Of a stretch of 64,000 nt of DNA, positions 4,900 to 43,965 are shown piece by piece; the stretch's first letter is position 1; every line of letters starts with the position of its first letter. The position numbers and the translations under genes are program-made. The stretch comes from Tubulanus polymorphus (lineage: Eukaryota; Animalia; Nemertea). The notes beneath the pieces were generated by a model, which made no database searches, was not told the DNA's origin, and was given only the letters and a program-made list of their open reading frames with translations. Location: the NCBI RefSeq assembly GCF_964204645.1, contig NC_134033.1:12532655-12596654 (forward strand), written 5' to 3'.

Positions 4900-7729
4900 G
4901 CCTAATGCTTAAAATTGTATAGACCTTGTACACGAGCGTCTCAGAAATGGGCTACCTCTCCATAGACAATAATGCTTAGTAACACTGGCTTTATAGTCAT
5001 CATCAAATAGGACTTAAGACGTCGCATTATTGAGCATTTTAAAATCCCAATTTGTATTTCCAATTTAATTTACGTATTAAGTGTAAGTCGTCTGCATGGA
5101 TGAGTCGTCAAAAAAAGATTCATCGAACTAAGCCACTTTGACTGTACACGGAAATGAAAACGTGCAGAATTTTATCATACTCTACGAACAGCCTGTGTCT
5201 GAAGTACTTACCGCTGAGTTTAATCCATTATTGTCTCAGTGAAATAAAAGCTAATCCGGAAAAACTAATGCGATATATCGCCGCAATATGCTGGGTACTG
5301 TGCGTTAGTTAATACACTACGACATGTCGCGCGCGGACAAGAGGTTCGAGCGTTACTGATATATTGATTATCAAATCAGTACATACTGTCACCGCTGACT
5401 GTATCACAGCATCTATCATAGACAGATTTCTGTATATTTGACCAGTACTGAACAAATACCGGCGAGAACTATAGCCCAGGGTCTTAACCAGTACTGAATG
5501 GAACTAATATAGCCGCTAGCTCGCCCACGGGGTACGAACCAGTACTGGGCCGTGTCAAGCCGAGGAATTGCACAGTACTTAGCTTGAATCCCTATAAACC
5601 TGAAACTGAGTACGCACACGCAGGGGGGGTCAGTTTTGATTAGCTAGATATGAGGGGAGCTCAGGGGCAAATCCAAGGGGAGGTGAAATGGGTGCGCACC
5701 CCTCCCTAATTGCCCTAAATTTCACGAGAAAATCAAAGAAAATATCAAACTGACACCTAAAAACGTTTGAATTCATACGCTTGTTCTCATTTTCTCCAAA
5801 AATGAGTCAATATTTTGCGATGAGCTTTCTGCGGGGGTGTCCTTTTCAATAATATGATGTGACCTTTTACCGAATCGAGACCCTAGAGATCGGCCCTTGG
5901 AGCTTCATAAATGCCAATTCCTGGAAACTTGTCAAAATCGCTATGGCTAGTGGTCATTTACTAGGGTAAAAGATAAGGCCTATCAGTTTAGGCAGTTCAC
6001 TTAGTACATGTTAGGCCTACTTGATCTAGGTGACCAGCGGGGCAAAGTCCAATTTTCAAGAACACCACATTCCAACATTTGTCCAATATTGGAAGACAAG
6101 TTTCATATAGAAAGACCATCCAGTAGTTTTAAGTGCAGAGTCCACGCTTAGACTTCAATTGTCAATGAGACAATGGATCTCATCACAGCAGAGCAATGCA
6201 ATACTGACGGTATACTGAGGCATCTCAATTGATTTATGTAAATCTCCAGCCTGTGCATGAAGTAATTTCACTGGAGGTCATCATTATTCGAAGCTATGCA
6301 ATATGTACTGCCAAAAATTTGACTAATCTTAATTAATGAATCTTTACTATTGCTTATAATACTGAAGGTTTTTTTATTCAGAGGCTGATGCGACGGTCAG
6401 TTAGAGCAAACAACATTAGAAGAGTTATTTTTGAAAATAAGACCTCTGGAAATGATGATCTTTTCCTGCAAATAAATGAGTACTGTATTCAAGAAATTTA
6501 TCATCAAATTTAAAAAAAGGGTTTTGGCAGTGTTTTTAGCGGTCTGTAAAAAAAATGGAGGGGCTACGCAAACCTGCCATTGCTAAATTTGAGAAAACTG
6601 GACAACGAGACCACCAATCCACAACATGGGCCTCGTGCAAAAATCATTTGACACCAGTATTCTACATAGGTACTATAGAAGAGGTCAAACCCTTGCGCCA
6701 GCCCGGCCTGCACCAATCTAATAAGTAATATTTTGAAATATTTAAAATTAATTAAACCTAATTCGATAATTAAATGGCTTAATTAAATTCTGCTGGAATA
6801 GTTTAGTTATGAAATTTCACATGATAATTTCTGGACGTTATTTCTAATTTAAATTAATGCACATAAGGCTTCGTAATAGTAATAAGCTTATACCGCACGG
6901 TGGGTACCGGCGGCACCGGTGTCTGAATTGCCTTTCTTATTCTTCGATTCAAAATATTAAGCATAATCTACCTACCTCGTACGGTCAATGTAAAATAAAT
7001 GATCCCAGGGTTTTTATTTTGTATCTGATCAGCCATAAATTATTCCAGCCATCATCGGGAACGCGGTAGCGGTAGGACATGTAGGATCAGCATCTCTCAT
7101 CCAGCATCCCCGTGTGTGTCTCTTCAGTAGTGTTTACATTAATTTTGACAGCTCGGTTGTCAAAGAGGTAAAACCGATATCCGGAAGGACGCCATAAATA
7201 ATTTACACTTTTTCGAAAATCGGTCAACAGAAGAAATTTTATACAGTCAAAACCACAATAATAAATTTAAAATATTATTTTTAGTTGTTTGGAAAACTAT
7301 TTCGTATTTGTTTAAACTTAAAACTATACCCACTGATTCAGAAAACGATTTGACTTTTGTAATCTACAATTCAAATTACCTTTGTTGTACCATCAAAAAT
7401 CTATGTTTTTGCTTAGAATTTTAATGATAAGCGATCAACAGTCTCCATGAAGATCGGGCATAATGAAGTATTTATGGGGATTCAAATCGAAGAAATAAAG
7501 AAAAATGACATTTTAAACGAAACACGGATTCGAACCCAGTACATTAATCATAGACTGGTTGCCTGTCCCATTCAATATGGGACAGGTTTTGCCCGTCCGC
7601 CATCTTCCGCAGAATTTACGGATCCAATCAGATTTCAGTATTTCATCACGTGAACAATGTAACATGGCCGCCTACACAGTGTCTCGATTTACGTTCCATG
7701 GACCTCTTTAAAGTCATTTTTTTATATCA

Positions 7730-8790
7730 ATGAAGAAAGAAATTCCATTAAAACTGCCAGGTAACGCGTCTGCAGGCACTTGTTTAGCGTGTGGTACCGA
7801 AAATATCGGAATTCAATTGAGGATGGCTGCGTAACCGCGCCGTCAAAACCTACCGGTCATCAATCGGCAATTTGGACTGGATGGAATGGAAAACAACAAT
7901 AATACATACAATACTACTATATACCACTACTGACATACTGAACGTTGCAGCAGAAACTACTTGTTTGTTCACTCGTGGCGATTGATTGATTGTTCTTAAT
8001 GTGACTTTGGACATCAGCAGTTGATCCAGTGAAAATAATGACATCAACAAGGTAACTTAACCTACTTACTTACTTTCTTTAAAATGTGAACATTGAATAT
8101 GAGTGCTATTTCACAAACACTATAGTGATTATCTATTGTAGACTTTTCTGAGCGTTTTAGTGATGACTTTGTGAGTCACAACTCATAGGATGAAATTGAA
8201 GTAATGCGTATCAAATTAGCTCAACATGAAAAGAATAGATTGCAATGCATCAAGGTAAGTTTGAAAAATGGATTCCGAACCATTAATTGTAAAGTCAATC
8301 CAGGTTTAATTGTGTGATGTATTTTAATTTCAGAATGATAACATCATGCAGTAATCAAAGGGAATAAAGAATCAGCACTAGCTGTCATGAAATGAGATTC
8401 CAAATAACAGGTGGTGAAACTCCTTGATTCTGATAAACTCATCATCATCATCAGTTACATCAGCAAGCGCCGCTGCGCCAAGATGTTGTGTACTTTATTT
8501 CTCCACTGCTCACGATCTGATAAACTGATGAGGTTTAAAGAGCTGGATTCTGTGAATAACTGCACTAGCGAGCCTTCAATTTGAATTGTGATTGGATTAT
8601 CTATCTGGTCGAGACATGGTCTTTATGATTCTAAAGACACTATCATTCAAATCAGGGATATCAGGATCGTCCCAATTTGTCGATGAAAAAAAAACTACTG
8701 TCTATGTCATGAAATACGTGACCCGTGTCATTGCTTATTCTCTTGTCAGGGGCTGAACAAGATTTTGTACCAGAAGTGAACAATAAATAT
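7730..8790 (+). pseudogene. Decayed spliced gene remnant at the left end of the large element
   Basis: Donors at ~7762, ~8052 and 8255. Exon 8142-8254 reads DFSERFSDDFVSHNS*DEIEVMRIKLAQHEKNRLQCIK (one stop). Acceptor at ~8333. AATAAA at ~8782. Confidence 0.4.
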
Positions 8791-9087
8791 TGAATTCAGT
8801 GAAAAAGAATTGGTTGTGATGAATCTTATAAACGATTTCTAGCAAAGTCAACATTGACATTGTGTGGTCCATGAGGAGAGAGGATATTTCGAATTTCCAC
8901 TGTGATCTGAGTAACTTGTCTTGACCAGTCTCTTAATTTGACAGTCCCAACTTGCTGTCGTTATCAGGAAATCAGTATAGCTGAGGTGGATCCAAATATC
9001 TGATCTCACAAAGCACTAAGGAGTTCAACAATTGTAAACTTTATTCAGATACTAAATATAATCATTTTACAACACTGTATTGAAACA

Positions 9088-9319
9088 TCAATTCACTAAA
9101 TACATCTTTACACACGAACACAATTCTGATGCATATTTCCAAAGCAAATCTCCAGAGGATGTTTGAATTTTACCTGGTTTAATGGTCAATCTTAGAATAG
9201 CACATCTCATTTCATGAATACAATTCTCGAGATCTTCAGGAGGGATAGCATCTAATTTGAATGTCAAAGAAATTGGAACTAAGCAGAACTTGTTGAAAAT
9301 ATCCCTAAAATCTTTATAT
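9088..9319 (-). pseudogene. Orphan terminal exon of an unidentified gene inside the large element
   Basis: Acceptor TTTGAATTCAG, then an open frame YKDFRDIFNKFCLVPISLTFKLDAIPPEDLENCIHEMRCAILRLTIKPGKIQTSSGDLLWKYASELCSCVKMYLVN*, then a minus-strand AATAAA at 9040-9045. Confidence 0.5.
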
Positions 9320-9525
9320 CTGAATTCAAATAAAACTTCAGCTGTGCTAGGGGAGGTATCGAGGAGGTTCAGTGAAAATTAAGCCTGGACTTTTTGTGTC
9401 TCCGTAAAACTAGACAAAAGTTAGTTTTTTCGGACTGGACCGAAATGAGATTTTCCTAGTCTCATTTGAAGTCTCAACTGGACCAAAATTAGGTTGGCTA
9501 GATTTTTGGAAACTGTAAAACTTAC

Positions 9526-12172
9526 ATCAATCAAACTGTTCGTGCTGCCGTAATGATTTGAAATCTCATAAATTGCTGGTCCTCGTGACAACGATTTACG
9601 TTTATTACGAGAGAACGGAGTCGGTGATTTCTGCAGCCAGCTCGATTCTAAAACACAAATTCATACATGAAAGATTCACAAAATAAAAACCGGTTGACAT
9701 TCAGTTATATGGTTGTATTAGTGAGTGAGACAGTCAGACTGTTTGAGGTTGAAATTTGACCTTAGTGTTAAAATAATAAAAGCTGAATTAACTTTAAAAT
9801 TAGACTAATTAAACAATTTTGTGGAACTGATTCCAGAGATCAGTTTCACACTCGGGATAAAACATTCCATTCTAAATTCTGAAGTCGAGCTGTAGAACTG
9901 GATTGAGATGTTTGTTTCTTACCGACAGGAATGACTTTATCTCCGACCGCTGCTTGTTTACGTCTGGGATCTTTATTACGGAACGGTGTATTCGCTCCAC
10001 TAACCGTCTGCTGTTTCCACGTTACAATCTCTCATGGCCAGTCGACAAATACAAACTGTTTACGAGTTGCTGCATTTAAAAACAATTACCAAAATACATG
10101 AACAAATACAAGGAAATATCTGTTACTCATCTACCGGTTACAGACAGAAGACTTTCAAAACTAGTCAGTTATAATGAATAATCCCGCACTGGTATCACTG
10201 TTTCTGAGTATTGGGAAACCTGGGCCCGGTTTCATAGACTGAATATCGAAGTTATCCCTAGGGGTAAATCCTCAATCTGGGTGACAAAACCACCATGGTT
10301 ACAATGAGAAACCATGGTAATAACTGACAGATTTCAAAATGTTGCCAGGGACTATTTTTCTTCCACATCTATGAAACCCAGCCCTGTCACTTATTGCTCC
10401 TTTAAGATAGGATTTAGATAAATCTCAAAACTCTCAAATAATCCAACTTTGAAATATCAAGAATAATGTGGAATAATTCATAATCAGGGCTGCAGTTGCT
10501 CAAAAGTTGGTTATAGTTAACCAGTTGACATGGTGACAATCAAAAGACCAACGTTTGTCAACTTCTTTTTTTGGTGAAGCAGATTCAGATTCCTACTTAC
10601 ATCGATAATCTTTGGATAAATCGTTTTCGGAATATCGTTTCCGTAGTAACGGAGAATTCAGTTGAGCACTGTTGAAATCGATCGGGTTGATTTTGCAGAC
10701 GTCCGGCGAAGATTGTCGTTTTAAACGCAACTTCGACAGAAATGATCGCCGTTCGACGTTTAGACGTAAACCGTATCGGGGCAAGTCGTCATCTGTTTAG
10801 ATATGTCTTCATTTTCTCGTAAATCTAAACAAAAATCAAATAACTAATAATCTGCTGAAAAGAATAACCCACAATTAGGAAGCAAGACTACAAGAGAAGA
10901 GTTAGATTGCTGACTTACCGATATCTACGGGGTATCTGAGCGCCAGTCGACTACCCATTAAAACCTGACTCTCAACTGATAAATTCAGACAGCTTCGCGC
11001 TTGTTGTCGAGCTCTTGTTTGTTGCATTAATGGCTTCAGTTAGTCGTCTTCTGCAAAAATATAGGATTTTCTTTAAATTTTGTTTTAATGAATCGGAAAT
11101 GTTACAGAGCGAAAATAAATCGGAAATCTTATAAAACTTGTATCTATCCCATTGCGAGGCATCTTGATACTTTTTGTGATTTGGTTCCTGATAAGTTAGA
11201 AGGGTAATCTTATTATTGTTTGTAAGCTTTAATTAAGGTTTGTGGAAACATCCAATCATAAAACTCAACCACAGACTGGTATTTCTGACCAGGTCCTGGA
11301 GGCAGTTCCACGATTTTTGAGTTTGAATTGAACTGCGCAATAAACCAATTGAAAATGAATTGATTCTTACTCTAAGAATAGGGGAACGGAGTTCTGCTGG
11401 TTAGACACTCACCAGTAGGTTTAGATACCCTATCAGGGAGTCTAATAGCGTAGCTATCAACCATTCTGGTTGAATATTCCTGAGGTTTTAACCACTCCAC
11501 GATACAATTCCAGCTACAAAATAAACAACACATTTTCACCTACAAAACTTATCTTAACTTAACTTCTTATCTTGAACACAATATTCAAAGATACGGTTTC
11601 ATAGTTTCGAATCGAGTTTGAAACTAACTCACAACCGTGAAACTAGAAGATTTGTTCAGTACTAACCTTCTTTATCAAATCCCATATGATGAAGCAGCAT
11701 GCCTGTAATATTATGAGCTTCTAAATCTAAACTTAATTTCAGCGGAGTTTGTACATCATTGATACCCTGAAAATATATACAACCACTTCACAGTCGGACC
11801 TCAAAGAAAGTTAACATTTAAATTTGATAATTTCTAGCTATAAATCAGTGTAGGGTTAATTCCAGTCAAGATCTAGATACAAGATGCTTCTTCGATTGGT
11901 CTTAGGGACACTCATAGCATGTTCTTATCTACAACTGTTCTCAAGATGAAAATGAGCTCAGCCAGATGTGATTTATGGATTTTCAGTAGATATAAACTGG
12001 ACTGGCTGGCTCTCTCACTGGAGTCACTGATACTCGATATATCGATATATACCTGTTGAAGCAGACACTGTACCATAGCCTCGTTCCGATGTCGACAGGC
12101 GTAGCAGATCGGAGTACCCTGACCTTCACCTCGATTACAATCAACCCCTAATTCTATTAAACACTCGACAAC
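9526..12172 (-). pseudogene. LRRK2-like gene fragment (ankyrin region plus pre-LRR linker), 7 exons, disabled
   Basis: GT-AG exons 12053-12172, 11667-11766, 11413-11513, 10919-11050, 10601-10824, 9923-10069 and 9526-9647. The translation VVECLIELGVDCNRGEGQGTPICYACRHRNEAMVQCLLQQGINDVQTPLKLSLDLEAHNITGMLLHHMGFDKEAGIVSWSG*NLRNIQPEWL parallels human LRRK2 as recalled (MVECLLLLGADANQAKEGSSLICQVC...LVELLLNSG...DVRKALTISI...IISLLLRRLALD...ICLGG...VEPSWL). In-frame stops at 11488-11490, 11040-11042 and 10032-10034, plus two apparent 1-nt frameshifts. Confidence 0.75.
10223..10383. mobile_element. PIF/Harbinger-type MITE
   Basis: GGCCCGGTTTCATAGA...TCTATGAAACCCAGCC flanked by CTG/CTG (3-bp TSD). Confidence 0.6.
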
Positions 12173-13907
12173 CTAAAAACAGAGAAGAACAAGAAACGAA
12201 ATTCTTAATATGGACTTGACCGTTTAATCTAGAATCAAAATTAAAGAAAAAAATTTTTTTTTTTTCAAATCATGAGTGGTAGGCATGAAGTTTTTGGCAG
12301 AATTTCAGAGGATCCGTATTCTGAGTGATTAAAAAAATCCTAATATTTCTCCCCTGAATTGAATCAGGGAGTTTTTATGAAAATCTGACGGCTGGGCGTA
12401 TGCAGCCCTGTCTATGGGTAGGTAAAATTTTTTTCATTTGTTTAAGGCACTCTAGGTGTATTCTGAGGGCTTTCTGGCCATCTTTCTTTTCTGACATTTT
12501 CCATGTACGGCAGAATCTAAATAATTTTTCATAATCTGAAAATTTGATTTGATGATCATCATCTCATAGCAATGTAATCATTAATGCTTCCAAACCACAG
12601 AAAACTTATCTATGCAATTAAAAAACCTAAGATCGACTCATGTAGAAAATCCGCGACTAATGTAACGTTTATTTTTTCAAATAATTTATATTTGAGGAAT
12701 CCCATGATGAAACATTGCATAGAATCATTCTATGCAATGGGTCCATCGTGCCATCATGATCTTTGACCCATGTGCATACTACTGATGAGGCCTATACAGA
12801 TTGGAATAACTTTTAAAATTTAAAATTGTTGACAAAACAACAGGATACCAACCACATAAATTGTAAGACATAAACAACACATAACGCATGGAAAATATGA
12901 AGCGGAACTTGAACTTTTGGGGGTAGGAGCGTTCACACCCTCCCCCCCCCTGAATACGGCCCTACAGGTACGGGATCTCTGTGATAACAGCATGAAATGA
13001 TGATTAATCATAAATACATTCCACTTACATCATGTGAACTACCGATCGATCGTACACTGTGTATGAAGTTTGTTAGACAATTTATTCACTTCAACAATAC
13101 TTCAACAAAATTTTTTCTCAGCTCTGCTGAGCTTAAAACTTGACCCGGCCGCCTATCTACCTTGGACATTACTGTTTTTTAGAATCGTGATCTATTTTAC
13201 CATAACAGACCCGGCAGCTATAGAAATGAACTGAAGAAACAAAGTATCATTTTTGTTAAGCCTTGAAGTTGGAATTATTTATGTCACCACTTCGGGGTAT
13301 CTATGCATTTATGAGAAATAAAGCTAGAGGTTTTCATCAATAAATGTTAATGTTTTTATTCTTCGATTTCAATCAATTATTCTAAAATTTAAGAAAAAAA
13401 AACAGGCAGCGGCTAAATTAGGAGGGGAGCTGTTGGGAATCAAAGAAATTTATTTTCATGGCCTTATTAAAGTTCTACAATATTGTTCAGCTGGCTACTG
13501 GCGTGTATTCAACCCGGCAGTAGAACCTTTTCATTCAACTTCTATAAGCTCTCAATGTAAATCCATTCAACAATAGAGACACAATTGCTGAGTTGTTGAC
13601 ATCATTCATACGCGCTATTGAATACGTCACCGGCTGACCACGGTGTACACAAGCATAGGCCATTCACCTCTGCACACTCACACTGTGAACATGCTACCGT
13701 GGATTCTCCTCCTGGCGATTTTCGCTGCGCTCCCGCTCTTGCTCCTGTTCCTGCTTCCTGAGGAACGACGTCTTTATGTTTTATGTGTTACTGTTCGTCT
13801 CCGTGCTGTCCTGTACTGTTCCGTGTTTATTAATCCGTTCTATTTTTCAGCATTTAACTCGTTTTATTTTTCAGGGCCGATTTCTCTGTCGAATTTCAAC
13901 GTTTGCT

Positions 13908-14137
13908 GGAACAAAACTAATGTCCGAAAGCGTCAGCTCTCCTTCGCCGGTCACGTGTCGAGGATGTCAGACAAAGCGTCGGTCAGGAAATGGCTGCCCT
14001 CTACACGCCCTCATACGGAACACGAAAACCAGGATGACGAGGCCTCACTGCCCCCACCTACCTACAAAGTGTGCTGAGTGATGTCAATGACGGGCATATC
14101 TGTGGGATTGCGCGGGATACAAATGGAGCGGTTATAC
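13908..14137 (+). mobile_element. RTE-clade LINE 3' fragment (left arm of an inverted pair)
   Basis: Encodes VRKRQLSFAGHVSRMSD, resembling the RTE C-terminal motif RxLRWxGHVxRMxD. Confidence 0.55.
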
Positions 14138-14140
14138 TGG

Positions 14141-14647
14141 ATTGTCACGCTACTAGCATTCATTGTGTCCTTGTGACCGCCCGGATGAGGGATGATTCTA
14201 CTGTCACGCTCTTTGTTTCTGGTATTCTGAGTAGGCTGAGGGATGATTCTACTGTCACGCTCTTTGATTTCTAGTTTGATTGCTAGTTTTCATTGTGTCC
14301 TTGTGACAACCTCGGTCAGTGGATGAAGTCTCTTGTCGGCTTGTGAGTGCTAGTTTCATTGTGTCCTTGTGACAACCTCGGTCAGTGGATGAAGTCTCTT
14401 GTCACGCCCGGATGAGGGATGATTCTACTGTCACGCTCTTTGTTTCTGGTATTCTGAGTCGGCTGAGGGATGATTCTACTGTCACGCTCTTTGATTTCTA
14501 GTTTGATTGCTAGTTTTCATTGTGTCCTTGTGACAACCTCGGTCAGTGGATGAAGTCTCTTGTCGGCTTGTGAGTGCTAGTTTCATTGTGTCCTTGTGAC
14601 AACCTCGGTCAGTGGATGAAGTCTCTTGTCACGCTTTTGAGTGCTAG
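14141..14647. repeat. Compound minisatellite, ~227-bp higher-order unit x2
   Basis: GCCCGGATGAGGGATGATTCT at 14179 and 14406. Subunits GAGGGATGATTCTACTGTCACGCTC and TTTCATTGTGTCCTTGTGACAACCTCGGTCAGTGGATGAAGTCTCTTGTC. Confidence 0.9.
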
Positions 14648-14681
14648 TTGAGATCCTGAATCTCAACCCGGTCAAGCTGGT

Positions 14682-14911
14682 TGTACTGCGCTATTTGTGT
14701 TTCGTGCAATTTTACAGGTGTGTCAGTTACTGACATCACCCAGTACATCCTGCAGTTAGATGGGGAATGTGAGGCGTTGTCATTCTGGTTTTCGCGTTCT
14801 GTGTGAGGGCGTGTAGAGGGCAGTATATTCCTGGCTGGCTCATTGTCTGGTGTTCTCGGCATGTGACCGGCGACGGAGAGCTGAAAAGCTTTCGAACATT
14901 AGTTTTGTTCC
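14682..14911 (-). mobile_element. RTE-clade LINE 3' fragment (right arm of an inverted pair)
   Basis: The reverse complement aligns with 13908-14137 and encodes QLSVAGHMPRTPDNEPARNIL. Confidence 0.55.
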
Positions 14912-16249
14912 GTACCAGGTTTTCATCGCTCTTCTCTTTTTTTCATTTCAGGACTCCCAAGAAGTTGAAGAAGATGCTAGAAGGCGACTACAGAAGATGC
15001 CGAAAAAAATACTGAACTCGGCAATCTTGAAAGTTAAGTTGATACCCACGTAAATTAGGATTAATGATGAAAAAATGTGTGACTACAAAATGTTTTTCTT
15101 TTTCTCAATTTCAGCTTCGACGAAACCCAAGAAGACAAAGAAGTACTTCGATTCCGAAAAAAATGATGTAAAATCGACAGACGATCACACAACTATATCT
15201 GTACTCCGATTTCCAAAAAAAAATTAGACAAAATTATCTTCAACCTTGTAAACTTTCGGACTACATGAAAAAAAAAGACCAAATATTGTAAAATTATCGA
15301 AAAAAAATTATGTAAAATCGACCGACGATCACACAACTATATCTGTACTTCGATTCACGCCTGTTTCGCTCCTGGCAGGTGTGTCACGATTGTAAGGGAC
15401 ACCAACTCAAAAAGTCGAACGAGAGCTCATCAACTAAGATCTGCCGATTAGAGAAAAGTGCACAGAAGGGGCCAATTTGGATGAAACTCAACCAACCAAC
15501 TTAGGAGATCCTCCGATAATGAACCCAGCCATCATAAAAGGTAATTTGATATTTGATACGAACTTAGAACATTTTAACCGATACTGAACCCAGCAAACTT
15601 GAAATGTAAGTTGATTTTTGGCGAACTGTATGTTTGCCTATGCAAATGGTCTGGAGAAGCAGTTTTCATTGAAAATGAATAGAGTACCGGTGTGTCAGCA
15701 AGGCGTAAACATTGGCTGTTGAACCAATAGTGTTGATTTTGGTGTCATGGTTTGGCTTAATGAGTTCTCGAGCCCACAAAAATTTCATAGTGATCGAGTT
15801 ATAGTAGGGGACTTATTCTTGAAAAACACGTAAAAACCTGCTTTTTAGCACTAAGTAATGGCACGTTTTCATATATGAGAATTTGCATACTTGGAATTGA
15901 AATATATAAAAGTTCAATCCTTCCTGGAAGTGTTGCTATTTTTTTGCGACTCATCCCGATGTACTTTTCGACCTACAGGTCCTCACCTTATAAACCCCCA
16001 AAATTTTCTCGCTTCTATTTATCTGAGTTGACCTCATTACCTGAGCTACATTGAATGTGATTGGCTGTTTGTTGGATAAAGGGGAAACTCCGGGAACATC
16101 TGATGTAATTGGGAAAGCCCATTGGGAAAACCCAATGTAGAACCCAAAACAAAATGGCGAGCATTTCATTCGACTAGGTATCGTATGTTCGCTTATAATT
16201 TGTTCGGTGTTACGAATATAACTGAGTAGGCTATTCTAGGTATATTATT

Positions 16250-17730
16250 TATGGAAATTATTATGATAAATTCTAAATGAAATATTTTGTCATTACAGGA
16301 TATCTTCTTTTAATCATTGCAGCTAAATTTCAACTATGAGAAAAACCAAGTTTGAGATCAACTACTCATCCAAAATCGACCAACTGGAACAGTGCACAGA
16401 TGAGGCCAACCAGAATCCAACTTATCAACAAACAAACTTAAGATGATCCACGCCGATTACGAACCAAGCAATCATTAAAGGTAACTTGATATACATGAAA
16501 TTATTTCGATAAATTCTAAATGAAATATTTTGTCATTACAGGATATCTTCTTTTAATCATTGCAGCTAAATTTCAACTATGAGAAAAACCCAGTTTGAGA
16601 TCAACTACTCGTCCAAAATCGACCAGCTTGAACAGTGCACAGATGAGGCCAACTAACTAACCAACTAATAGGATAATCGCCGATAACCAAAATCATAAAA
16701 GGTAACTTGATATACATGGAATTATTTCGATAAATTCTAAATGAAATATTTTTTCATTACAGGATATCTTCTTTTAATCATTGCAGCTAAATTTCAACTA
16801 TGAGAAAAACCCAGTTTGAGATCAACTACTCGTCCAAAATCGACCAACTGGAACAGTGCACAGATGAGGCCAACTAACTAACCAACTAATAGGATAATCG
16901 CCGATAACCAAAATCATAAAAGGTAACTTGATATACATGAAATTATTTCGATAAATTTCTAAATGAAATATTTTTTCATTACAGGATATCTTCTTTTAAT
17001 CATTGCAGCTAAATTTCAACTATGAGAAAAACCCAGTTTGAGATCAACTACTCGTCCAAAATCGACCAACTGGAACAGTGAACAGATGAGGTCAACTAAC
17101 TAACCAACTAATAGGATAATCGCCGATTACCAAGCAATCATAAAAGGTAAGATAATCGCCGATTATGAAACCAGCAATCATAAAAGGTAACTTGATATAT
17201 GTGGAATTATGTCGATAAATTCTAAATGAAATATTTTGTCATTACAGGATATCTTTGTTTGCTCATTTCAGCTAAATCCTATCTATATGAAACTGCCCAG
17301 CTTTAAATCAACGACTCATCAAATATCTACAGATAAGCTCTGCCCACTGAACAATCCAAGCTTGAATCAAATGCATCAACCAATTGTTCTAACCGATACT
17401 GAACCCAGCAAACTTGAAATGTAAGATGAGGCCAACTAGAATCCAACTTATCAACAAACAAACTTAAGATGATCAACACCGATTACGAACCAAGCAATCA
17501 TTAAAGGTAACTTGATATACATGAAATTATTTTGATAAATTCTAAATGAAATATTTTTTCATTACAGGATATCTTCTTTTAATCGTTGCAGCTGAATTTC
17601 AACTATAAGAAAAAGCCCATCTTGAGATCAAACACTCGTCCAAAATCTACAAACTGGAACGGTGCACAGAAAAGGCCAGAACTGAACCCATCAATCTTTA
17701 AAGGTAAGTTGATATACATGAAATTACCTG
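16250..17730 (+). repeat. Tandem array of six ~220-320-bp units with exon/intron-like structure
   Basis: Acceptor-like (T)TGCAG|CTAAATTTC at 16323, 16566, 16787, 17009, 17272 and 17592, each followed by a donor-like AAAG|GTAA. Confidence 0.9.
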
Positions 17731-20700
17731 TATAAAGAAATTTCAGTACTCATATGAATATCATTTAATAATTGACTATCATCAAAATCTATTTACTGGT
17801 CCACATGGCTGAACTTATCTTCACTAGTCTTAAACAATGATGAACTAGTCCTACTACTGCAATTAATTATTGGGGTTTGAATCAGCAATTGACGTCAATG
17901 AATTTTCTTTGTGAAAAACAGGGTGGCTTGTAATTTGAAATGACACATAAATTATGATAAATCTGTCTGAAATGTTTTGCTTTTTTCACTTTGTTTCAGC
18001 CAAACTACATCTCGGAAAAATTGGCCTGAAGACGACACTCACAAGTAGATGAATACTGATCGACCCATTTGTTGTTGAAAACTGCAGAAGCCCAAATGAG
18101 AAGTTGAGGAGCCAGCAATCTCTGCACTACTTTATTGAAGCTCTGTGGCCGGTAGTAAATTTAAATATAGCTAGGCAATGATTGCTTGAATATTAACAAT
18201 ATTAGACGAAATGATTGAGTGAAGACTCTTAAATATTCTTTTGTCTGATAATTAAAATGTAGATTGGTCAGTTATTGATTAAAAGATTTTGTAAGTACGT
18301 ACAATTAAGGTAAATTCAATATCTTATGTGACATTTGAAATTTTTCGAATGTACTGTAGACATTTCAGGCCTCATATGACTATTTTTTAACTTACAATCA
18401 AGATATAGATAGAACAATTTACTAATTAACCAATCGCTTAGATATAAGCAATCATTCAATGTCTTGTAATGTTTGATGAGAAATTCTTCTGGTGTAGATA
18501 TTTCAAGGCCCCATTTAAATTTAGGTCGGCTTTACTTAAAGATATATCAATTAAACTTTATCGTCGGTTAATAGATTTTTCTTTACAAATAATATATTGA
18601 TAAATTTTTAAAGATTGAGGCCATATTTTACAGTATATACTATGTGCTGCCTCACACATAACAGTAATGAATTTCATAAGATAGTGTCTAAGGCATTATC
18701 GAGGTCTGGCGTTATATGGGGAAAACTATGGACTACAGGTCTTTATGAAACAGTGATTTGGTCTCAACATTTTGACAAATCCAGAATAAACCAAAGCTTT
18801 AATTGATTTAATTCATTCCTGAAACACTGCGTCTTGTTTTGGGCGACGCATGATAATTGTTGTTTGACTGACAATTAGCATAAATACAGCCAGGAAAAAT
18901 GGCTTAGATATTCACAATTAAGATGAATTCAATATTTGATGTTAGATCAAAACTTTTTATATCATAAATATTTATTGAAATATAGCTGAAATATATAATA
19001 TATTTGAGCACATCTATAAATGAATCAGTCTCATTGACTGATCAGTTTTGTATCGCCAACTGCCGCACATATAACGACTAGTCATGCTTTTCAATATTGC
19101 CAAAATTTACTCTAACCTAACTGATTCAATTAATATCTACAAGCCATACTGTGTGTCAAGTGACGCATATTAGATATAGTTTAACTGACAATTAGAATCT
19201 AAGATGAATTACTCATTAACGTATTACTTAGATCGATTAAGGTTAATTCAATTGTTATGTGAAATTATCTCTAATTCCATGGAAATTTAAAATGTAGCTG
19301 ATACATGTGTATCTGAGCACATTTGTTTATCTGTATCTTAGTGAACCTATTGTGTCTTCATACAGCCGTATTAGTTTTGATACATATTGCCAAAATCATT
19401 TCACGCAGATTTACTTCCGATCGAAGGGAGATAAAACAAATCTGTGCACAAATACATTCCTGGATTTGGAAGGGGGAATATTTCAATTTCACTGTGTATG
19501 TCAGATTGAAAGCCTTATTCTGACAGGATATCCTAAACTTAGGTCTTATTCCTCATGCTAATAGCTCTCTTTTACTAACCCCTCTCCTTCGAACTATTTT
19601 CTAGCATCATGACTCGCACCGCACCAGGGAGGTCCGGTCATAACAAGGTCTTTCGGTCCTTATACACAGTGTACTATATAAGGGAAAAAAAGATTATATA
19701 GCCATTCGGCTAAGGGAATTTTTAATCTACCACTAAAAATATGCTTTTTTATCTTTAATTTCTGATGAATTCAAATAGTGACGAATTCACCACATCTGAA
19801 ATTCTACTCATGTAGATTTTCAGGCTCCATATGAATATTGTTCAACTGACAACTAAAATATAGCTAGTATGATTATTAATTAATGGTTCGCTTAGATACC
19901 TAGAATTCAATTAAAATCAATTCAATATAATGAATATAAGTGAAACTTATTCAAAATTGCGCAGTGGATGAGACGACTGTATCGTGCAATGTCATCTGCG
20001 TCTAACTGGGCCACATGTGTGTGGGATCTGTTGAATCAGTTAGGTTTTGGGGAATTCTGGGTTAGTTAAGCTAGGTATCAAAAGCTCTGATGCAAAATCA
20101 GCAGTTCAAATAGTGATTAATTCAAATTTGTACCGGATCTGAAATTCTTCTCGTGTAGGAATTTCAAGCCCCATATAAAATATTGTCCGAGACAATTTCA
20201 ATTATAGCTAGGACATTATCAATTAACCAATTGATTAGGTATCTAATTCAGCATCTTCATATAAGGTGAAAGTGCTCAAATCTAAACCATAAGGGTTGAT
20301 AAGACAACTGTATAATTTAATATTGATTGATATATAAATAATACTGGGTATGTTTTAACTCTGTCTCTTGTGCGTGGGATTTATTGAATCTTTAAGGCTT
20401 TGCAGAATTCTGGATTTGTCGAGGTGTGGGAATGATTCAAGGTTTCTTAAATCTGTAGAACCATGTTACTTATAGGATCAGTGTGCTCAATGCTGGCAGC
20501 GCACTCACTCTTCAGTTAGTTACATTATCATAATTACAAGATCATTGTATATATTAGGAGCAATATTTAGAATAAATGAAATGGATTAGAATACCATTCA
20601 CTGGGTACAGATGTCACCATCTGTGGGTAGAAAACATCTCTTAAGTTTATTAACAGACGATGAAGTAAATTTGATAATACGAACATGGTTTAGCTGACAA

Positions 20701-21270
20701 TGGAAATATATATAGGCCAATATTACTAGCAGGTTTGCACTCTATGATGGGCCTGGGTTTCAATAAAAGACACAAAGAATTTCAAGAAGATAGAAAAGAA
20801 AACAGTTCAAAAATAATTTGATAAGATTGATTATGCATTACTAAATTTGTTGTAACTCTGGTATTCCTAGAGATGACTATAGATGCTTTAGTTGAGTTGT
20901 TGTTAAACTATAATAATCAACCATTGCTTAGATATTTAGAATATAGATGAATTACTATATGAGTTGAATTTCATAAATATCATTTAAGACTCTTATCAAA
21001 ATCTACATAACGATCCACATTGCTGATCTTATATATGAATTGACATGATAATTATGATCAGTGATATTCGAAAGGATTTTCTGCTCAAAAGGTTCTGCTC
21101 TTTTCTTCAGCTTGCCGTTTCAGACTGATTGGAAGATAGTTTGAATGAACCGGAATCAAATTTCCCAATTATGTACTTCGATTTCAGACATACTCGAGAA
21201 AAACTACTATAAAATTTAAAAAATTAGACGGTGAAAACGACAAAAAAATTAAAGTTAGACAAAATCCTCC

Positions 21271-21785
21271 CACCTTGTAAACTTTCGGACTAGTTACATG
21301 AAAAAAAGACCAAATATTGTAAAATATAGTTATTTCCAAAATCTCGATGTATCAAATTAGGCAGAAAAAAAATAGATAAAATTATTCAACCTTGTAAACT
21401 TTCGGACTAGTTACATGAAAACAAGACCAAATATTGTAAAATATAGTTATTTCCAAAATCTCGATGTATTAAATTAGGCAGAAAAAAAATAGATAAAATT
21501 ATTCAACCTTGTAAACTTTCGGACTAGTTACATGAAAACAAGACCAAATATTGTAAAATATAGTTATTTCCAAAATCTCGATGTATTAAATTAGGCAGAA
21601 AAAAAGTTAACCCCAATCAGTCACTCAATATGTGCTTCGACTATTCAAACGGTGAAAACAACCAAAAAAATTGAAGTTAGACAAAATTATTAAACGTTGT
21701 AAACTTTCGGACTAGTTACATAAAAAAAAGACCAAATATTGTAAAATTATCTTCAACCTTGTAATATAGTTATTTCCAAAATCAG
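21271..21785. repeat. ~117-bp tandem repeat, 3 full copies plus a partial copy
   Basis: CCTTGTAAACTTTCGGACTAGTTACATGAAAA...GACCAAATATTGTAAAAT recurs at ~21271, 21387, 21504 and ~21695. A related copy lies at ~15241. Confidence 0.9.
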
Positions 21786-21839
21786 AATTAGGCAGAATAA
21801 AAGATTGTTTGAATGAACCGGAACCGAATTACCAATTAT

Positions 21840-22710
21840 GTTCTCTGTAAAAACGACCGCCGATCACGCAACTGTATCTGTACATCGACTTCCGATTTTG
21901 AAAAAAACCACCGTTTCGCTCCCGGAAGGTGTGTAGGTTTGTAAGGGACACCAACTCGAAAAGTCAAACGAGAGCTTGAGGTCAACAACTCATCAAAGAT
22001 CTGCCGATTAGAGAACAGTGCACAGAAACCATCGTCGATGATGAAACCAGCAATCATAAAAGGTAACTTGATATACATGGAGTTATTACGAGGATTTCTA
22101 AATGTCGTGATTACAGGATATATTTCTTTACTCATTGCAGCTAAGTTTCAACTAAAAGAAAGAGACCAGCTTAAAATCAACTACTCATCTGAAATCTACG
22201 GATTTGAACAACCCACAGAAGAATCAAACTCATTAGATGGAAATTACCGGTATAAAGAAATTTCAGGCCTCATATAAATATCATTTGTTAAGTGATTATC
22301 ATCGAAATCTATTTACCTGTCCACATGGCTGATCTTAGAACTTTTATCTTTACTAGTCTTACACCTTGGAGTAAGAAATTTTTCAAATGATTACTCCAAG
22401 CTTAAACATTGATGAACTAATCCTACTACTGCAATTATTTATTGGGGTTTAAATCGGCAATTGACGCCAATGAACCTAATTCTGATTTTGGAAATAACTA
22501 TATTAACTAAGTGAAAAACACGGTGGCTTGTAATTTGAAATGACATGTAAGTTATGATAAATCTGTCTAAAATGTTTTGCTTTCTTCACTTTGTTTCAGT
22601 CAAACTACATCCTGGAAATAATGGTCTGAAGAAGACACCCACAACGATTACTGATTGACCCATTTGCTGATGAAAACTGCAGAAGCCCAGATGAGAAGTT
22701 TAGAAGCCAG
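21840..22710 (+). repeat. Diverged local duplication of ~15310-15550 and ~17720-18115
   Basis: Shared blocks such as GTTTCGCTCC.GG.AGGTGTGT, GTCCACATGGCTGA and TGTTTCAG.CAAACTACATC...GCAGAAGCCCA.ATGAGAAGTT. Confidence 0.8.
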
Positions 22711-22744
22711 TGACAGATTAATCACTCAACGATGGATTCTTCTA

Positions 22745-22975
22745 CAATCGATGATTTCTATAAAACATTTTATCAGGAGCAGCAGAGACAATAGTGAATC
22801 TTATAAACACTGATTCAAGCGACAAAGCTAATGGATTATCTCATAAATACTGATTCAGGATAAACACTGTTTTAAAAGCAGCAAAGACAATAGTGTATCT
22901 TATTAGGAGCAGCATGGATAATAGTGCATCTTATAAACACTGAGATCCAGGAGCGGCGAAGACAATAGCGGACTT
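22745..22975. repeat. Degenerate ~42-bp tandem repeat
   Basis: TTATAAACACTGATTCAGGAGCAGCAAAGACAATAGTG-like unit recurs about 5 times. Confidence 0.7.
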
Positions 22976-25900
22976 CTGCAGTAAAGTATTGATTTTTTTG
23001 CTTATCACCTTTTTCAAACCAGTCTGATGGATAATATAGAGTTTTCGAGGAAACTATTTGATAATGTTTATGCAATGTGAGAGTCTAATAACAGCTAAGT
23101 TCCATTAATGCACGATTTTGGTCTTTGATCCTTGGTCGATAGATAAGTCAAGTTAAGTTAGTCACTAGGGGTAAATGGTCATGTCGAGTGCCTAGTTTTG
23201 ACTCGTAGGTCTGTTGACTTAACTCCTAAACTGAGATATAGTTTCAACATGAATTGTGAGTTTAATCTTCCAACTTACCATAGTTAAACATAGTCAACTG
23301 TGGCTTGTCCGTGTAGATATCACATAGTTAGGAAACATAGAACATAACGTTAGACCAGTGTTTAACTATTTGCTGAATTGTAGATGTACAAATTTGACGG
23401 CATTGATATTTTCGAAGGTAACCAATTTGAAAATTTTGAAACAAATCGTAGATTTCGATTTAAGCCTCCATCAATCTGTTTGATGATCATAGCTATGTAT
23501 TTGAAATCGAAAGCTTTATTTGAAAGGAGACCATTATTTACATTCGAGAGGTAAAGCTAGGAATAACAAGGCATAAAGTTATAGTTAGGACTAATTTTTA
23601 ACGTTTTAACATTGTTTATAGCTGTTTGAACTTCTTTTATTGTAATGGGTAAATCCATATCACGAGATGGCTCTCGTGAATAATCACTTAGCTTCAAATC
23701 GGGTGTATAATGATTATTAAGGAGTGGCAGTGAATCAGTAGCGCTTTCTTAAAATGGGCCCAGAACTTTACAGTGAAAAAATGCCTGCAGTTGTAAATAG
23801 AGGAGTATAAATAATACATAACTACAAACTACAAGTACATAAATTAATTCTAAAAAATAAAAAAAAAAACAATTAATAATAAATAGAATAAACAACAATA
23901 CAAACAAACAACAAATTAATATTCTATTTACATGAAAAGGCATTTTTTCAAATATTTATCAATAAGGTTCTTCATTTATCGAACAACCTTCCCTAAGTAT
24001 AGCGAAAACCCGAGATCTTTTCTGTTGTTATTCAAAGCATTCTATCAACTCAGTTATTGTAATGAACAAAACAAATAACCATAAATCTTAACTAAATCGA
24101 AAACATTTAAAAAAATAACTGATATGATAGAATGCTTTGAATAACTGTGATGAAAGATCGACCCGTCCTTTCAACTAGCCGCGCTCAATCACTGCTGTGA
24201 CTGTTCATTGTTATACATGTTCTAAAATCTGGTACATACAACAGCTATAAACTTAAGTTATTGATGTTATTGATTAGTTACCGATTGTATAATTATGTTG
24301 AAGCTGCCAGGAAAAACGTCAGAATACTTAGTATGTAATGTCAAGGTGTTTGGAAATCTTTAAGACAAGGCAAAGTAGGCAAAATTCTAGTTTTCTAGTG
24401 AAAGTAATGATTAATTGATACTAAGAGTTCCAGAGTGAATCTGAGTTTCTCATCTCTAGTTTTAATGCTTTTATGTTGGAGACTGTTATTGTGACACAGT
24501 TTGCATGTTTGTAAATTAGGAACTTGCAGGATGATTCCTCGATTAAGATATTATTGTTGCGTGAATAAAACAATGTACATTTTCATCATTCATGTTGAAA
24601 CTTTTCAGTTGTTAAGTTTTATAGCAAAAATTTCACTTTGGTGCTTTTCAGTGGTTCATAAAATACTGAACTAATCAAGGCCCTGTCGAAAATAGCAGGA
24701 GCATAGAATAATTGTCCTAGCTTTGTTTTGAATATCAGTTTAACCGCGTCTGTGTGGGGCCTGTAATATCGGGACAAGAAGAATTTCTGATCTTTATATA
24801 GAGTTGTATTCATATGTACTATAAATTGAATAATACAATTAAGAATTTACTGTAGCTTCCTCAGTCAAACCATATTTGTTAGAAGATACTCGATTTAACT
24901 TGAATTATCACGAAGGAAAATATGTTATATCACTTGCCACCTCAAAAATCAACTTGTCCCACATGAATAGTCCGATTATGACACAATAATCCCTTGCATC
25001 GAGTGGGATAGAAGCTTTGAGACATAGAATTACACAAGCCCGGTGGATGAGTGATTATGATAACCTTCATGCCCTAGTGAAAATATACTTGTCCCGCGCA
25101 ATTGGACTAGTGCTTAGATCAGACCCTGCTTTGTTTCAAATGTAAAATTTGTGAAAAAAGTACCGTAGTTGATAATGTTTGAAGAAATCTCTTAAAGATG
25201 AGGAAAATTTGGCAATGTTTTTAGTTTTCTAGTAATAATTAAGATTAATTAGTTAACCTTGCGCTTTCCAGAGTGAGTGAATTTGTAGGTTTAATGCTTT
25301 TATTTTGAACTGTTTTAAAATAACCCATTAAGCCACCAGGGTATAATTGTTGAGCAAGAATAAAACGACAGACATGTTCGTCATTCATGTTAAAACTGTT
25401 CAATTGTTTAGTTACGTGTATTGCAACTTTTTTACTGTGGTGCTCACCTATGGTTCATGAAATACTATTTTCATTAAGGCCCTTATGGAAAAATAGAGGA
25501 GCAGTCTCTTGATAAAGAGACTTTTTTGAAATACAGGTCATGTTTTTGTAAATGACTGAGGCACTTCCTCAAGTATATGGATACCTGTCATTTAGGTATG
25601 ATTGTTGTTGTGGGGATAAAATGACATGTTCATGTCAATTGTTCATAAAACACTGATTTATTAAGGTCCATCGAATAAAGTTGGGCTTTTTCTTGACAAT
25701 TGAGATGTCCTCAATCTCGATGTCATTTGAAAAGTTGACGATGATAGATTCATATTTCATGAAATATAACAAATTGTCGGTTATATTGACCTCATGAATT
25801 GTCAAATTCATAATCTTAAGAGTTTCAGACTAGTCGTTTTTTGGTGTTTTATGGATCAAAAATTACAATTCGTACTTCTGTTATTTTCCTATTGATGCAA

Positions 25901-27246
25901 ATTGTATAAATCAGCTGTAGTGGAAATGTATCGTAGATAAAGACTTCTAAATACCTTACATGTAACTTTTGTTTGTTTTTAAGTTAGTACAATTTCATAC
26001 ACAATAAAATAATGAAATTATTATTAAAATTTGAGAAGATAAGCTAAAAGTTAATAATTTGACATGTGAAAATAAAATGATGTAAAGAATGTAAATCAGA
26101 TTTATTACTTAATCCCACGCTTTCCAGAGTATTTGGCCAGGTTTATCTCTGGTTTTAGTGCCGGGGCCATGGACAATTGAGTCCATGGTTGTACCATAGA
26201 CTTTTTTGTTTTAGAGTCTATATTTGGACCTAGGGGCGTATAAACACTCATCTATAGTTTATACGCCTATGGTGGTTGGACTAATTGTTTTTGAACGTCC
26301 ACGTGTTTGAGGAGCTTACGTTATAATTCCTCGAGCACAAACCTGGCATTTTGTATAATTGTTGTACACTGTATGAGAATAAATATGATTTTGAAATTTG
26401 TCATTCGTTGAGTTAAGCGACAAGTGTTACCGGTACTAAAACAAAGCACTACTAAATAAAAAGACTATATGCACCAGAGAAAACCGACCAATTTACGTTT
26501 CAGATGCATTTGTTTATATCTGGCATTGCCTACACTCATTGGCAGAGGTGGTTGAATACACAGATAGCACCCCTAGTGACGATTTCTAATGAGTGCAATA
26601 GCTCATCGGACTTCGTTTTAATCATGCATAGTTCTTACACCTCTAAGTGCATAGGTCTTCGTTTCAGTAGCACATAGTTTTTAGTAACACCCCCATTTCA
26701 CTGCCCTTCTATTAAATTCACGATATGATATAAATAAGTGATGCATTCTGATGAATTCAATAGGAGAGAAAGGGATGGAGAGGGTAGTCTGTAATTCAAC
26801 GGGAAAAGTTTCAAAAGTTTGAAGAACACATGAAGATGCCAAAAGCAAGATGAGCTTAGATTATCTCACAGCAAACAAACAATCAGCATCCAGCTAAACA
26901 GTTGTCAGGATTTGATAGGCCTATAATCAATAATGAATGTGACATGTACATGTATTACAGATATATAACAGGCACATGTACCTTTAGTAAACCGAGTTCG
27001 CACGCCGATAGTAGAAGTCTTGGATTGAATCCTGCCACCCATCCTATTATATAAATACAATAACTAGCATACTCCAATAAATCTGAAAAAAACAACAAAA
27101 CATATATAGAGGCAGCAGGACCTGGTTTACGTGCTAGGACCTGATTCAAGTTCTAGGTAACATTAGGATACAGAAACTATACCAAAATTTTGCTCAATAG
27201 AGAAGATAGAGACCGCTAACCAGTCTATTTTCTGCCCGCGAAGTAG

Positions 27247-28308
27247 TAGACTGGTTGCCTGTCCCATTCAATATGGAATTGGTCAGGATGAATTTTATAA
27301 TCGATTTCTAGCCAATGTCAAAGTCAACATTGACATTGTGTGGTCCATGAGGAGAGAGGATATTGCTAATTTCCAGTGTGATCTGAGTAACTTGTCTTGA
27401 CCAAGTCTCTTAATTTGACTGTCCCAACTTGCTGTTTGTATCAGAAATCAGTAGGCCTAGGCTGAGGTGGATCCAAATATCTGATCTCACAACGCGCTGA
27501 GTAGTTCAACAATTGTAAACTTTATTCAGATATTGAATATAGTCAACTGTATTAAAACATCAATTCACTAAATACATCTCAGAAAGGATGTCCCCTGTTC
27601 CTTCAGAATGTTCTGTATTCAGTGCATCACTATGATCGCTGCCACGACCATCACGTGACGGTCGTGGCAGAGCTCACCTCGCACTAGATTTCGATCCTTG
27701 TTAGTTTGTATTCCGAGTACCAGGTAAATTATCAGCGGATTTATCTGATACTTACATTAATTAATGTCTTTCCGTCCATTGTAAAGGGCAATTTTGATAT
27801 CGCTCGAAGCTAAGCAAATTCGAAGAGACGCCATCTTAACCAGGAAGTAACTCCCTGCTACTTTACATGTTTGACCTTACATTTTGACATGCATCAAAAA
27901 TGTAAAATGGAGGATGGGCACAACCGGTCTCTAATTGAAGATAGAGACCATCCTCCCTCTGCAGGGACTCGAACCTGATGGCATCGCTACACTCAGCCAC
28001 GGCACGAACCCCTGCATCAGTAGACCGGGTGCGCAGGTACATGCGCAGCTTTCCGAACGAAAACTGGCGGCACCAATCAGATTGCTCGTTGTATAATCGT
28101 TGAGGCAAATTTCAAGGAAGAACTATAAATGGGAAAACCGGGCTAAAATAAAACGGGATTTCTGATTGGCTAAAAATCACATCATCTGAACTGCGCATGT
28201 ATCTGCGCACACGGTCGATTATGGCAGGTTTCGTGCCGTGGCAATCTCGATGCCATCAGGTTCGAATCCCTACCGGGGGAGGATGGATAGAGACCGGTAA
28301 CCAGTCTA
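27247..28308. mobile_element. Internally deleted ~1.06-kb copy of the same element family
   Basis: Begins with the same TAGACTGGTTGCCTGTCCCATTCAATATGG as 7551. About 27277-27578 duplicates ~8807-9107. Ends at the AACCAGTCTA terminus. Confidence 0.8.
27949..28285. mobile_element. MITE with long imperfect TIRs containing a tRNA-type B-box; 9-bp TSD
   Basis: CATCCTCCC...GGGAGGATG termini and ~38-bp outer TIRs. TSD GATAGAGAC at 27940-27948 and 28286-28294. GGTTCGAATCCC at 28259-28270. Confidence 0.85.
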
Positions 28309-28375
28309 CATTAATCATAGATGACAGCACTACATACCACATTCAATACAAATATATTCTATTTTGCGAATAATT

Positions 28376-28400
28376 TTGAATGGGACAGGCAACCAGTCTA
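28376..28400 (-). mobile_element. Isolated terminus of a further family member, in opposite orientation
   Basis: TTGAATGGGACAGGCAACCAGTCTA is the exact reverse complement of the first 25 nt at 7551 and 27247. Confidence 0.7.
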
Positions 28401-28419
28401 TGTAGTGCAGGTAACCAGT

Positions 28420-28659
28420 CCAAACGCAAGGTGGAGGTATAAATCCTAGCCGTCACAATCCGCGCACGCGCACTCCACTGGTTCTGAGCACCGTGTACGC
28501 ATGCGCATGATCAAATACATACCGAGAACGAGGCTCCGAACGTGGCGGATCGAAAAATCTTTGCGATAAATTATTTTTGGAGAATTTCGGGCGATATTTA
28601 TCGGATTTTAACCGGCCCGAGGCCTTTTCCATCGGACTAATAGTAGTGACTGAACGATC
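28420..28659 (+). promoter_or_regulatory. Rab6 promoter / 5' UTR region, CpG-rich, housekeeping-like
   Basis: NRF1-like motifs CGCGCACGCGCA (~28462) and ACGCATGCGCAT (~28497) upstream of the ATG. ETS motif CCGGAAGT at ~28751 in intron 1. Confidence 0.55.
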
Positions 28660-37798
<9,139 letters not shown>

Positions 37799-42771: not shown

Positions 42772-43086
42772 CATCCTCACGGGCAGGGTTTCGAATCTGA
42801 CGGCATCGCTTAACTCAGCCACTCTGCCACACTAGACCGGGTGCGCAGGTACATGCGCAGGTTTGCCAGAAGAAAACTTGCGGCACCAATCAGGTCACCC
42901 GGTTGAATAATCGTTGAGGCTTTCACGGAAAAAAACTATAAATGGAAAAAACCCTGGCTATAAAATGTCATTTCTGATTGTCTAATAATGACATCATCTA
43001 AGCTCGCACGTAACTGTGCAGTTAGTCTACGTACCATGGCGAGTCTCGATGCCATCAGGTTCGAATCCCTGCCTATATGGAGGAGG
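42772..43086. mobile_element. Second copy of the B-box MITE
   Basis: Colinear similarity to 27949-28285. Flanks AAAAGACAC / GAAAGACAC (8 of 9 match). Confidence 0.85.
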
Positions 43087-43965
43087 GAAAGACACTGGCA
43101 AAGTTAGATTTTTTTCCGTTGAATCGTTTACATAAAAACGACTGTTAGACGCGGCGGCCGTGCAACAATCGTGTTTGGTAAGCGATCAGTCACTATAGTA
43201 TAGAGGCTATACCGGTATGTTAGGAGTATGTTTAAACGATTTTTATATGTTACGCGTCTTAAAACTGTGATGATATGTTTTCAAAAATGGATGAATTAAC
43301 TATATTATAAATGAATGAATACTGCTTTCTACTCATTGTACGTTATAAGCTTACGTCGGTCTAATACCGTACATAAGTTCACTGAAGGCTTTGTAAAGGA
43401 ACCGTTTCTTTCTCATCAGAAGCTGAATTTCCTCGGGGGCGGCTCGTACGGCAATTTTATTCCAGACAATTCAGTTGTGGTTTCCAAAACACTTAATACT
43501 GTTTGTTCTATAGAAAATTATTCCCCGGAGAGATTTACAGTTACAGCGCAAACTCAGATCGCCGAGCTCATAATTTTTCTGAGGGCAGAACCATGCCCTG
43601 ATGAGAAACAAGTGATTCCCTTTACATCGTCAGATATACGCGTTGTTCGGTCACGTGCTTCGCAATGGAATATTCGTTTGGTAAATTAAATTTACTCGCA
43701 CTTAAAAAACGTTACCTAAATTGTAAGAACATATATTATATACATGTATAGTACGTATAGGATTAAACAGTTCTTATCGATTTGACCAAGTTTTGACTGA
43801 CTTCAGAAAAAGATGCACGCACAATTTGTTTGAATTGTTTCAGCGTGTGTCTAGTGTTTATCGTATTGATAGATATATTGATATTCTTGCTCGAATTTTT
43901 TTCCGGTATAATTACGTATGTGCGAAATTCGTCACGGTTAATGCACGTTACGTTGAATACATGTA

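Follow-up and report, generated by a model that had tools for sequence, protein, structure and literature searches.

The 64,000-nucleotide stretch of the nemertean Tubulanus polymorphus that was analyzed here (the window; RefSeq assembly GCF_964204645.1, contig NC_134033.1, positions 12,532,655 to 12,596,654; positions below are those of the window unless marked otherwise) contains a block of 20,758 bp with the ends of a DNA transposon family, next to a Rab6 gene. The Rab6 start codon lies at 28660, the first coding exon extends from 28660 to 28729 on the forward strand, outside the element, and a downstream exon matches Rab6 with an E value of 7e-19. The block runs from the outer left terminus at 7551, which reads TAGACTGGTT, to the outer right terminus, which reads AACCAGTCTA and has its last base at 28308. 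It is flanked by a perfect 9-bp target site duplication (TSD), CATTAATCA, at 7542-7550 and 28309-28317 (both forward), which has no further copy in the window; the chance of a 9-bp match is about 6e-6 per given end pair. Inside, a right end terminates at 27227 and a left end begins at 27247, so that a large member A (7551-27227) and a small member B (27247-28308) face each other across a gap of 19 bp. An earlier note on the window, made from its letters alone, had proposed this makeup of a large and a deleted member, together with the TSD, the outer termini, the facing inner ends and the place beside Rab6, and all of these were recovered at the exact positions.

The terminal inverted repeats (TIRs) are perfect over 10 bp and imperfect over about 19 bp. 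Beyond base 10, left and right ends differ, and each normally carries a subterminal palindrome of its own (fold z scores of -4.3 for the left and -4.7 for the right end). The outer left end of A (7551-7586, forward) has its palindrome at 7562-7586, and the inner right end of A (27203-27227, reverse) no longer has one. The left arm, 7551-9119 (forward), is common to dozens of standard family members of 1.2 to 2.3 kb, which consist of this arm joined to a homologue of 27580-27949. Member B (forward), which provides the outer right end, is an internally deleted standard member, in which 30 bp of left end are followed directly by a homologue of 8807-9107. An unrelated fold-back element of about 340 bp (27948-28286, strand unassigned) interrupts the right end of B, where it duplicated 7 bp (ATAGAGA), and this inner insert is also present in a full-length relative at C7:13732708-13734957. 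Window copies differ from other family members by 2 to 7% substitutions, and no intact transposase frame was found in the block (the longest stop-free stretch has 151 codons).

A second locus was taken as the donor. A sister of member A, in inverted orientation and 20,313 bp long compared with 19,677 bp for A, is located at C9:15152956-15173268, 2.6 Mb from the window, and was the only other long copy to turn up in genome searches that returned coordinates. The two were compared through alignment coordinates and spacing, and the identities include gaps, with substitutions and indels taken together. They amount to 93% for 7551-9300, 93% for 8901-10438, 96% for 10593-12300, 99% across the junction of the two large internal repeats E2 and E3 (17750-18550), 90% for 25916-27103 and 94% for 27163-27246. 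The order is the same in both copies, the left-end offsets agree to within 0.7 kb, and about 6.7 kb are directly aligned. The last match comprises the right end plus exactly 19 bases (15152937-15152955), i.e., the whole spacer, and ends where B starts. The donor's own TSD has about 10 bp, of which 9 were read in its left copy, and is identical to bases 1 to 10 of the spacer; across the 268-Mb genome, the string TTTCTGCC-N-TAGACTGG is found once, at the left end of the donor copy.

The window spacer is the right copy of the ~10-bp donor duplication (TTTTCTGCCC, 27228-27237, forward), carried along, plus 9 bp of donor flank (27238-27246, forward), which presumably also represents the left TSD copy of B; the donor alignment stops at 27246. 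The inner right end at 27227 is thus the true end of A at the donor site. A circle junction formed by two copies of one TSD was considered for the spacer and dismissed, since the halves of the spacer differ and the spacer matches the donor flank. Because the spacer holds the donor's TSD and flank, the direction of transfer was from donor to window, and because the donor carries a matching interior between the same ends, the cargo was assembled before the move. Source, direction and captured flank were all read from one assembly.

Taken together, the block is very likely a composite transposon, or macrotransposon, of a non-autonomous short-TIR family with 9- or 10-bp TSDs. Its outer ends come from two separate elements that share one new TSD, and the DNA between the members derives from the donor site. 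The course of events began with the ~20-kb member A, in which a host-gene fragment and E2/E3 were by then present, inserting at C9:15.15-15.17 Mb with a TSD of about 10 bp. On one of the chromosomes with A, the 1-kb deleted member B would then have inserted 19 bp past the right end of A. The new TSD and the captured flank show what followed: a transposase acting in trans used A's left end with B's right end, skipping both inner ends, and placed the 20,758-bp unit 2.6 Mb away, inverted and 343 bp upstream of the Rab6 start codon, a distance counted from the TSD. A alone would have been restored at the donor by gap repair from a homologue without B, or by later recombination between haplotypes. 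We regard this combined sequence of B's insertion, joint use of the outer ends and donor restoration as having a high probability. The proposal of the earlier note, a composite block mobilized in trans and transferred as a whole, therefore gains support from the donor with the same interior, the donor TSD kept in the spacer and the lack of a transposase frame.

Several observations weigh against this account. B was not seen beside the donor's right end, as judged from coordinates in one haplotype, so its insertion next to A was not observed; a duplicated GCGAAGTAG at the donor, if present, would be B's footprint there. About 13 kb of the donor interior are placed by spacing alone. The donor identity is uneven (90 to 99%, gaps included) and in places does not exceed that of other repeat copies, a pattern implying that the event is old, that gene conversion followed or that the origin was mosaic. 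No autonomous element with the family's ends was found. The first and third points suit an improbable alternative in which B was resident at the window with its CATTAATCA duplication and A plus 19 bp of flank entered later by recombination through the shared left end, either as a circle produced by an attack of A's left end on a point 19 bp past A's right end or through ectopic gap repair with the donor as template. This would yield the identical final structure and account for the absence of B at the donor; the left arm is about as close to ordinary members (91-92%) as to the donor (93%), and gap filling is the chief route to single-copy Pack-TIRs in animals (PMC8277862). The junction is, on the other hand, a blunt join at the exact terminus in which TAG appears two times instead of being shared, the form that a transposase produces. 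Moreover, B has just 30 bp of left end, and spacers of 18 to 21 bp between independent ends recur at unrelated loci.

Growth in place, in which later nested insertions enlarged a small element that had entered the window site and nothing large ever moved, is highly improbable. The interior is mostly multicopy repeat, as such growth would leave it, but the donor has the same interior between the same ends, including the E2/E3 junction at 99%, and its TSD and flank are held in the window, which largely refutes growth in place. An assembly artifact, i.e., a false duplication or chimeric join, is hardly credible at all, as each copy has its own distinct TSD, the copies differ by 1 to 10%, and a 9-bp duplication at the exact termini is not something an assembler would create.

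The composite reading fits the behavior of the family elsewhere in the genome (267.8 Mb), where 228 left-end and 265 right-end matches were found and none in reversed controls. Among 28 end pairs compared at the fetched loci (up to 2 mismatches allowed), the TSD was 9 bp in 11 and 10 bp in 6, which answers the question of the earlier note whether other copies share the 9-bp duplication. Statements below on what lies near or between listed ends refer to the 100 exact matches listed per end type. About 50 distinct loci plus the window yielded 15 distinct end-to-end gaps of 18 to 32 bp, minimal elements excluded, with outward-facing spacers of 18, 19, 19 and 21 bp; random placement of ~490 ends predicts about 2e-4 per end for a neighbor within 50 bp. 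Insertion at 18-32 bp from an end already present is thus frequent in the family and explains how paired members form. L013/L046, where of two right ends it is the more distant one that agrees with the TSD (2 mismatches), is apparently a second case of a skipped inner end. The terminal pattern of the family was absent from the metagenomes searched.

Many members are minimal, being 45 to 63 bp long and consisting of two ends alone. They occur in loci L001, L005, L009, L016, L019, L021, L039, L060 and others at about 1460-1560 (in L019 at 2172-2223), many with intact 9- or 10-bp TSDs. No two of their internal junctions agree, which suggests that they arose repeatedly and independently when gap repair was aborted. 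Several minimal elements (L002, L006, L008, L023, L024, L060) have a common left flank and unrelated right flanks, with a TSD version in L060; their distal ends were not found within 1.5 kb, and they are possibly further flank transductions. Many near-identical family members, tens of kilobases or more apart, are also found at C3:0.44-1.30 Mb and C6:1.2-1.7 Mb, where they probably lie inside large segmental or tandem duplications.

As to the mobilizing enzyme, an assignment to AcademH is on balance probable. YR..YR termini typify AcademH, and those of this family are TA..TA. The two TSD lengths agree as well, in that mixed 9- or 10-bp TSDs are given as the AcademH signature in PMC10045372. The transposase-encoding copy that the earlier note had called for was not found among the ends listed, and DUF6589 gave seven weak matches in the genome, none of them between listed ends. 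Two left-right pairs of about 10.85 kb, C4:10907332-10918182 and C5:11220973-11231854, were rejected as autonomous copies, having no DUF6589 or Harbinger match inside; the C4 pair seems to hold an LTR-like insert after a minimal end.

There is a considerable possibility, if a smaller one, that the enzyme is not of AcademH type. Taken singly, a MuDR-type enzyme is rather unlikely, and an unusual Harbinger-like or other transposase more unlikely still. MuDR also makes 9-10-bp TSDs, and in this respect the family agrees with MuDR and Pack-MULEs. Typical Pack-MULEs have TIRs of about 100 bp or more and short-TIR MULEs exist; the TIRs here, 10 bp perfect and ~19 bp imperfect, do not reach the long type. 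For MuDR's group, TSDs of 4-10 bp are given in PMC10045372. A non-AcademH enzyme would also suit the DDE_Tnp_4 genes just inside left ends in L010 and L012 and the position of the DUF6589 matches away from the listed ends. PHIS (PIF/Harbinger) elements, however, make TSDs of 0-4 bp (PMC10045372), at odds with 9 or 10 bp, and no listed end was near any of three 95%-identical copies of the L012 transposase, which thus looks like a passenger. The Harbinger genes in L010 and L012 were therefore set aside as candidates for the family's own enzyme. The very short TA..TA TIRs and the mixed TSDs likewise favor AcademH. A 3.4-kb member with a 9-bp TSD (2 mismatches) extends from L010:1501 to L044:1523 (C2:11006450-11009848). 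It contains a frameshifted Harbinger-type transposase and a convergent gene that resembles Myb/SANT by eye, lacks obvious Harbinger TIRs and is nested in an older minimal element having its own 9-bp TSD.

Most of the cargo is other multicopy repeats and not freshly captured host genes. E2 and E3 occur in dozens of copies, most of which have no listed family end nearby. E2 (9252-18118, forward), the 5' part of a large non-coding repeat, matched at all 29 places scored and contains an inverted repeat at 13908-14911 and tandem arrays of 66/227 bp and 221 bp, in line with the repeat arrays that the earlier note had described. E3 (18119-27200, forward), a second large repeat whose 3' half is common with E2, has a 117-bp array, and many copies begin abruptly at the point that corresponds to 18119, where TC follows A as expected of a Helitron 5' end. 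A clear Helitron 3' end (hairpin plus CTRR) was not seen in the window, and E3 is putatively Helitron-like. Since the E2/E3 junction exists in three further places of the genome (93-95%), it probably predates A. A ~13-kb non-coding mosaic repeat family is represented at window 9252-27200, C5:6320296-6332958, C3:245901-258880 and C2:31093582-31103963, and its 221-bp arrays contain intron-like GT..AG units. The RTE pieces reported by the earlier note were not confirmed: no Pfam match was obtained, and the likeness to non-LTR reverse transcriptase tails is by eye.

The cargo also includes captured non-element sequence between the TIRs, as in Pack-TIRs. Exon-like pieces on the reverse strand run from 12172 down to about 8200 and form one or more decayed spliced host-gene fragments, the left boundary being approximate. 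Exons were searched one by one: the ankyrin exon (11981-12172, reverse) had ANK_LRRK2 as its best Pfam match (E value of 7e-5), under the cut-off and nearly tied with generic Ank models, and the other pieces had no Pfam match. The two exons that follow resemble by eye what we take to be the LRRK ankyrin-to-LRR linker. Searches of the PDB and of 1.8 billion proteins gave generic ankyrin proteins alone. Of the "intron-containing LRRK2-like fragment" of the earlier note, the decayed spliced fragment with an ankyrin exon therefore stands, and the LRRK2 identity is unproven. No intact source gene was found, the ankyrin exon being present at six genome loci that are all repeat copies (9 candidates scored). 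An exon-like frame runs across 9251, and 9119-9251 is present solely in A and the donor. A may therefore retain the original long capture, with the standard members derived from it by deletion.

The landing site lies 83 bp from an older family end that the earlier note had overlooked. Just beyond the TSD, a third left end (28378-28400, reverse, terminus at 28400) is followed by a degenerate right end (28410-28422, terminus at 28422), together occupying 28378-28422 on the reverse strand. The orphan left end is part of a fold-back at 28327-28408 with a 10-bp inverted flank and inverted CATTCAA (z of -3.7). On the reverse strand, the reconstructed empty site (7520-7550 plus 28318-28345) resembles decayed tRNA-type A and B boxes. 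Targeting to tRNA B boxes was set aside, their enrichment being weak (7 of 60 near family ends versus 25 of 480 controls). Ends in L001, L002 and L016 are close to conserved host genes, namely, an HSP90-like gene (by eye), a Methyltransf_32 gene and a 2-hydroxyacid dehydrogenase gene, hinting at a bias toward genes or promoters. Elsewhere in the window, a fold-back family (27948-28286 and 42766-43101) bears tRNA-like boxes in each of its arms, has CCATCC as its termini and made TSDs of 7 bp (ATAGAGA, AAAGACA), and a 189-bp coding tandem array in 12 copies at 61041-63337 is unrelated to the block.

Among animal composite transposons bounded by two TIR elements are the FB-flanked giant transposing elements of Drosophila, which have long foldback arms and move intact genes over far larger spans. 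The outer ends of nearby Ac/Ds elements in maize move intervening DNA of 10-28 kb in macrotransposons (PMC9910405, citing Huang and Dooner 2008 and Wang et al. 2022). The outer ends of two elements are used there and a copy can stay at the origin, both of which have a parallel here. Ac/Ds belongs to the hAT superfamily, with an 8-bp TSD, and was observed experimentally in a plant, whereas the present case is a natural one in an animal, with 9/10-bp TSDs and known from sequence; moreover, merely 19 bp of host DNA lie between the members and the bulk lies within one of them. The family resembles AcademH non-autonomous elements in having 9- or 10-bp TSDs within one family and TA..TA termini (Kojima 2020, as cited in PMC10045372) and differs from AcademH in that no transposase or helicase gene is linked to the ends listed. 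No published description of 20-kb cargo-laden members, 45-63-bp minimal members or end-adjacent insertion was found for AcademH in the literature consulted. With Pack-TIRs and Pack-MULEs (PMC8277862), it shares a TIR element that contains non-element sequence and became multicopy via repeated transposition with distinct TSDs; unlike in these, no parental gene was identified, other repeats make up most of the interior and each outer end is supplied by a different element.

The block reveals neither a new element class nor a functional captured gene, and macrotransposons and Pack-TIRs are already known; what is new is the record linking source to target, the minimal members and the targeting of sites next to existing ends. 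It represents an unusually well documented natural macrotransposition in an animal, the source, direction and captured flank of which are readable from one assembly, and shows that no more than TIRs of 10 bp and short subterminal palindromes is needed for 20 kb to be moved and set down beside a housekeeping promoter. We tentatively suggest that the family transposase, probably an AcademH transposase-helicase pair, might be steered to insert 18-21 bp outside (about two TSD lengths) or 22-32 bp inside an existing end. To our knowledge, this pair is biochemically unstudied. If such steering exists, paired ends would be built routinely, inner ends skipped and flanking DNA carried off, so that composite transposons and 20-kb cargo would arise in an animal by a route intrinsic to the family, with a minimal mobile unit of about 45 bp. 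The family, with its 45-63-bp minimal elements, mixed TSDs and end-adjacent targeting, offers defined substrates for studying the choice of ends and targets by a little-studied transposase.

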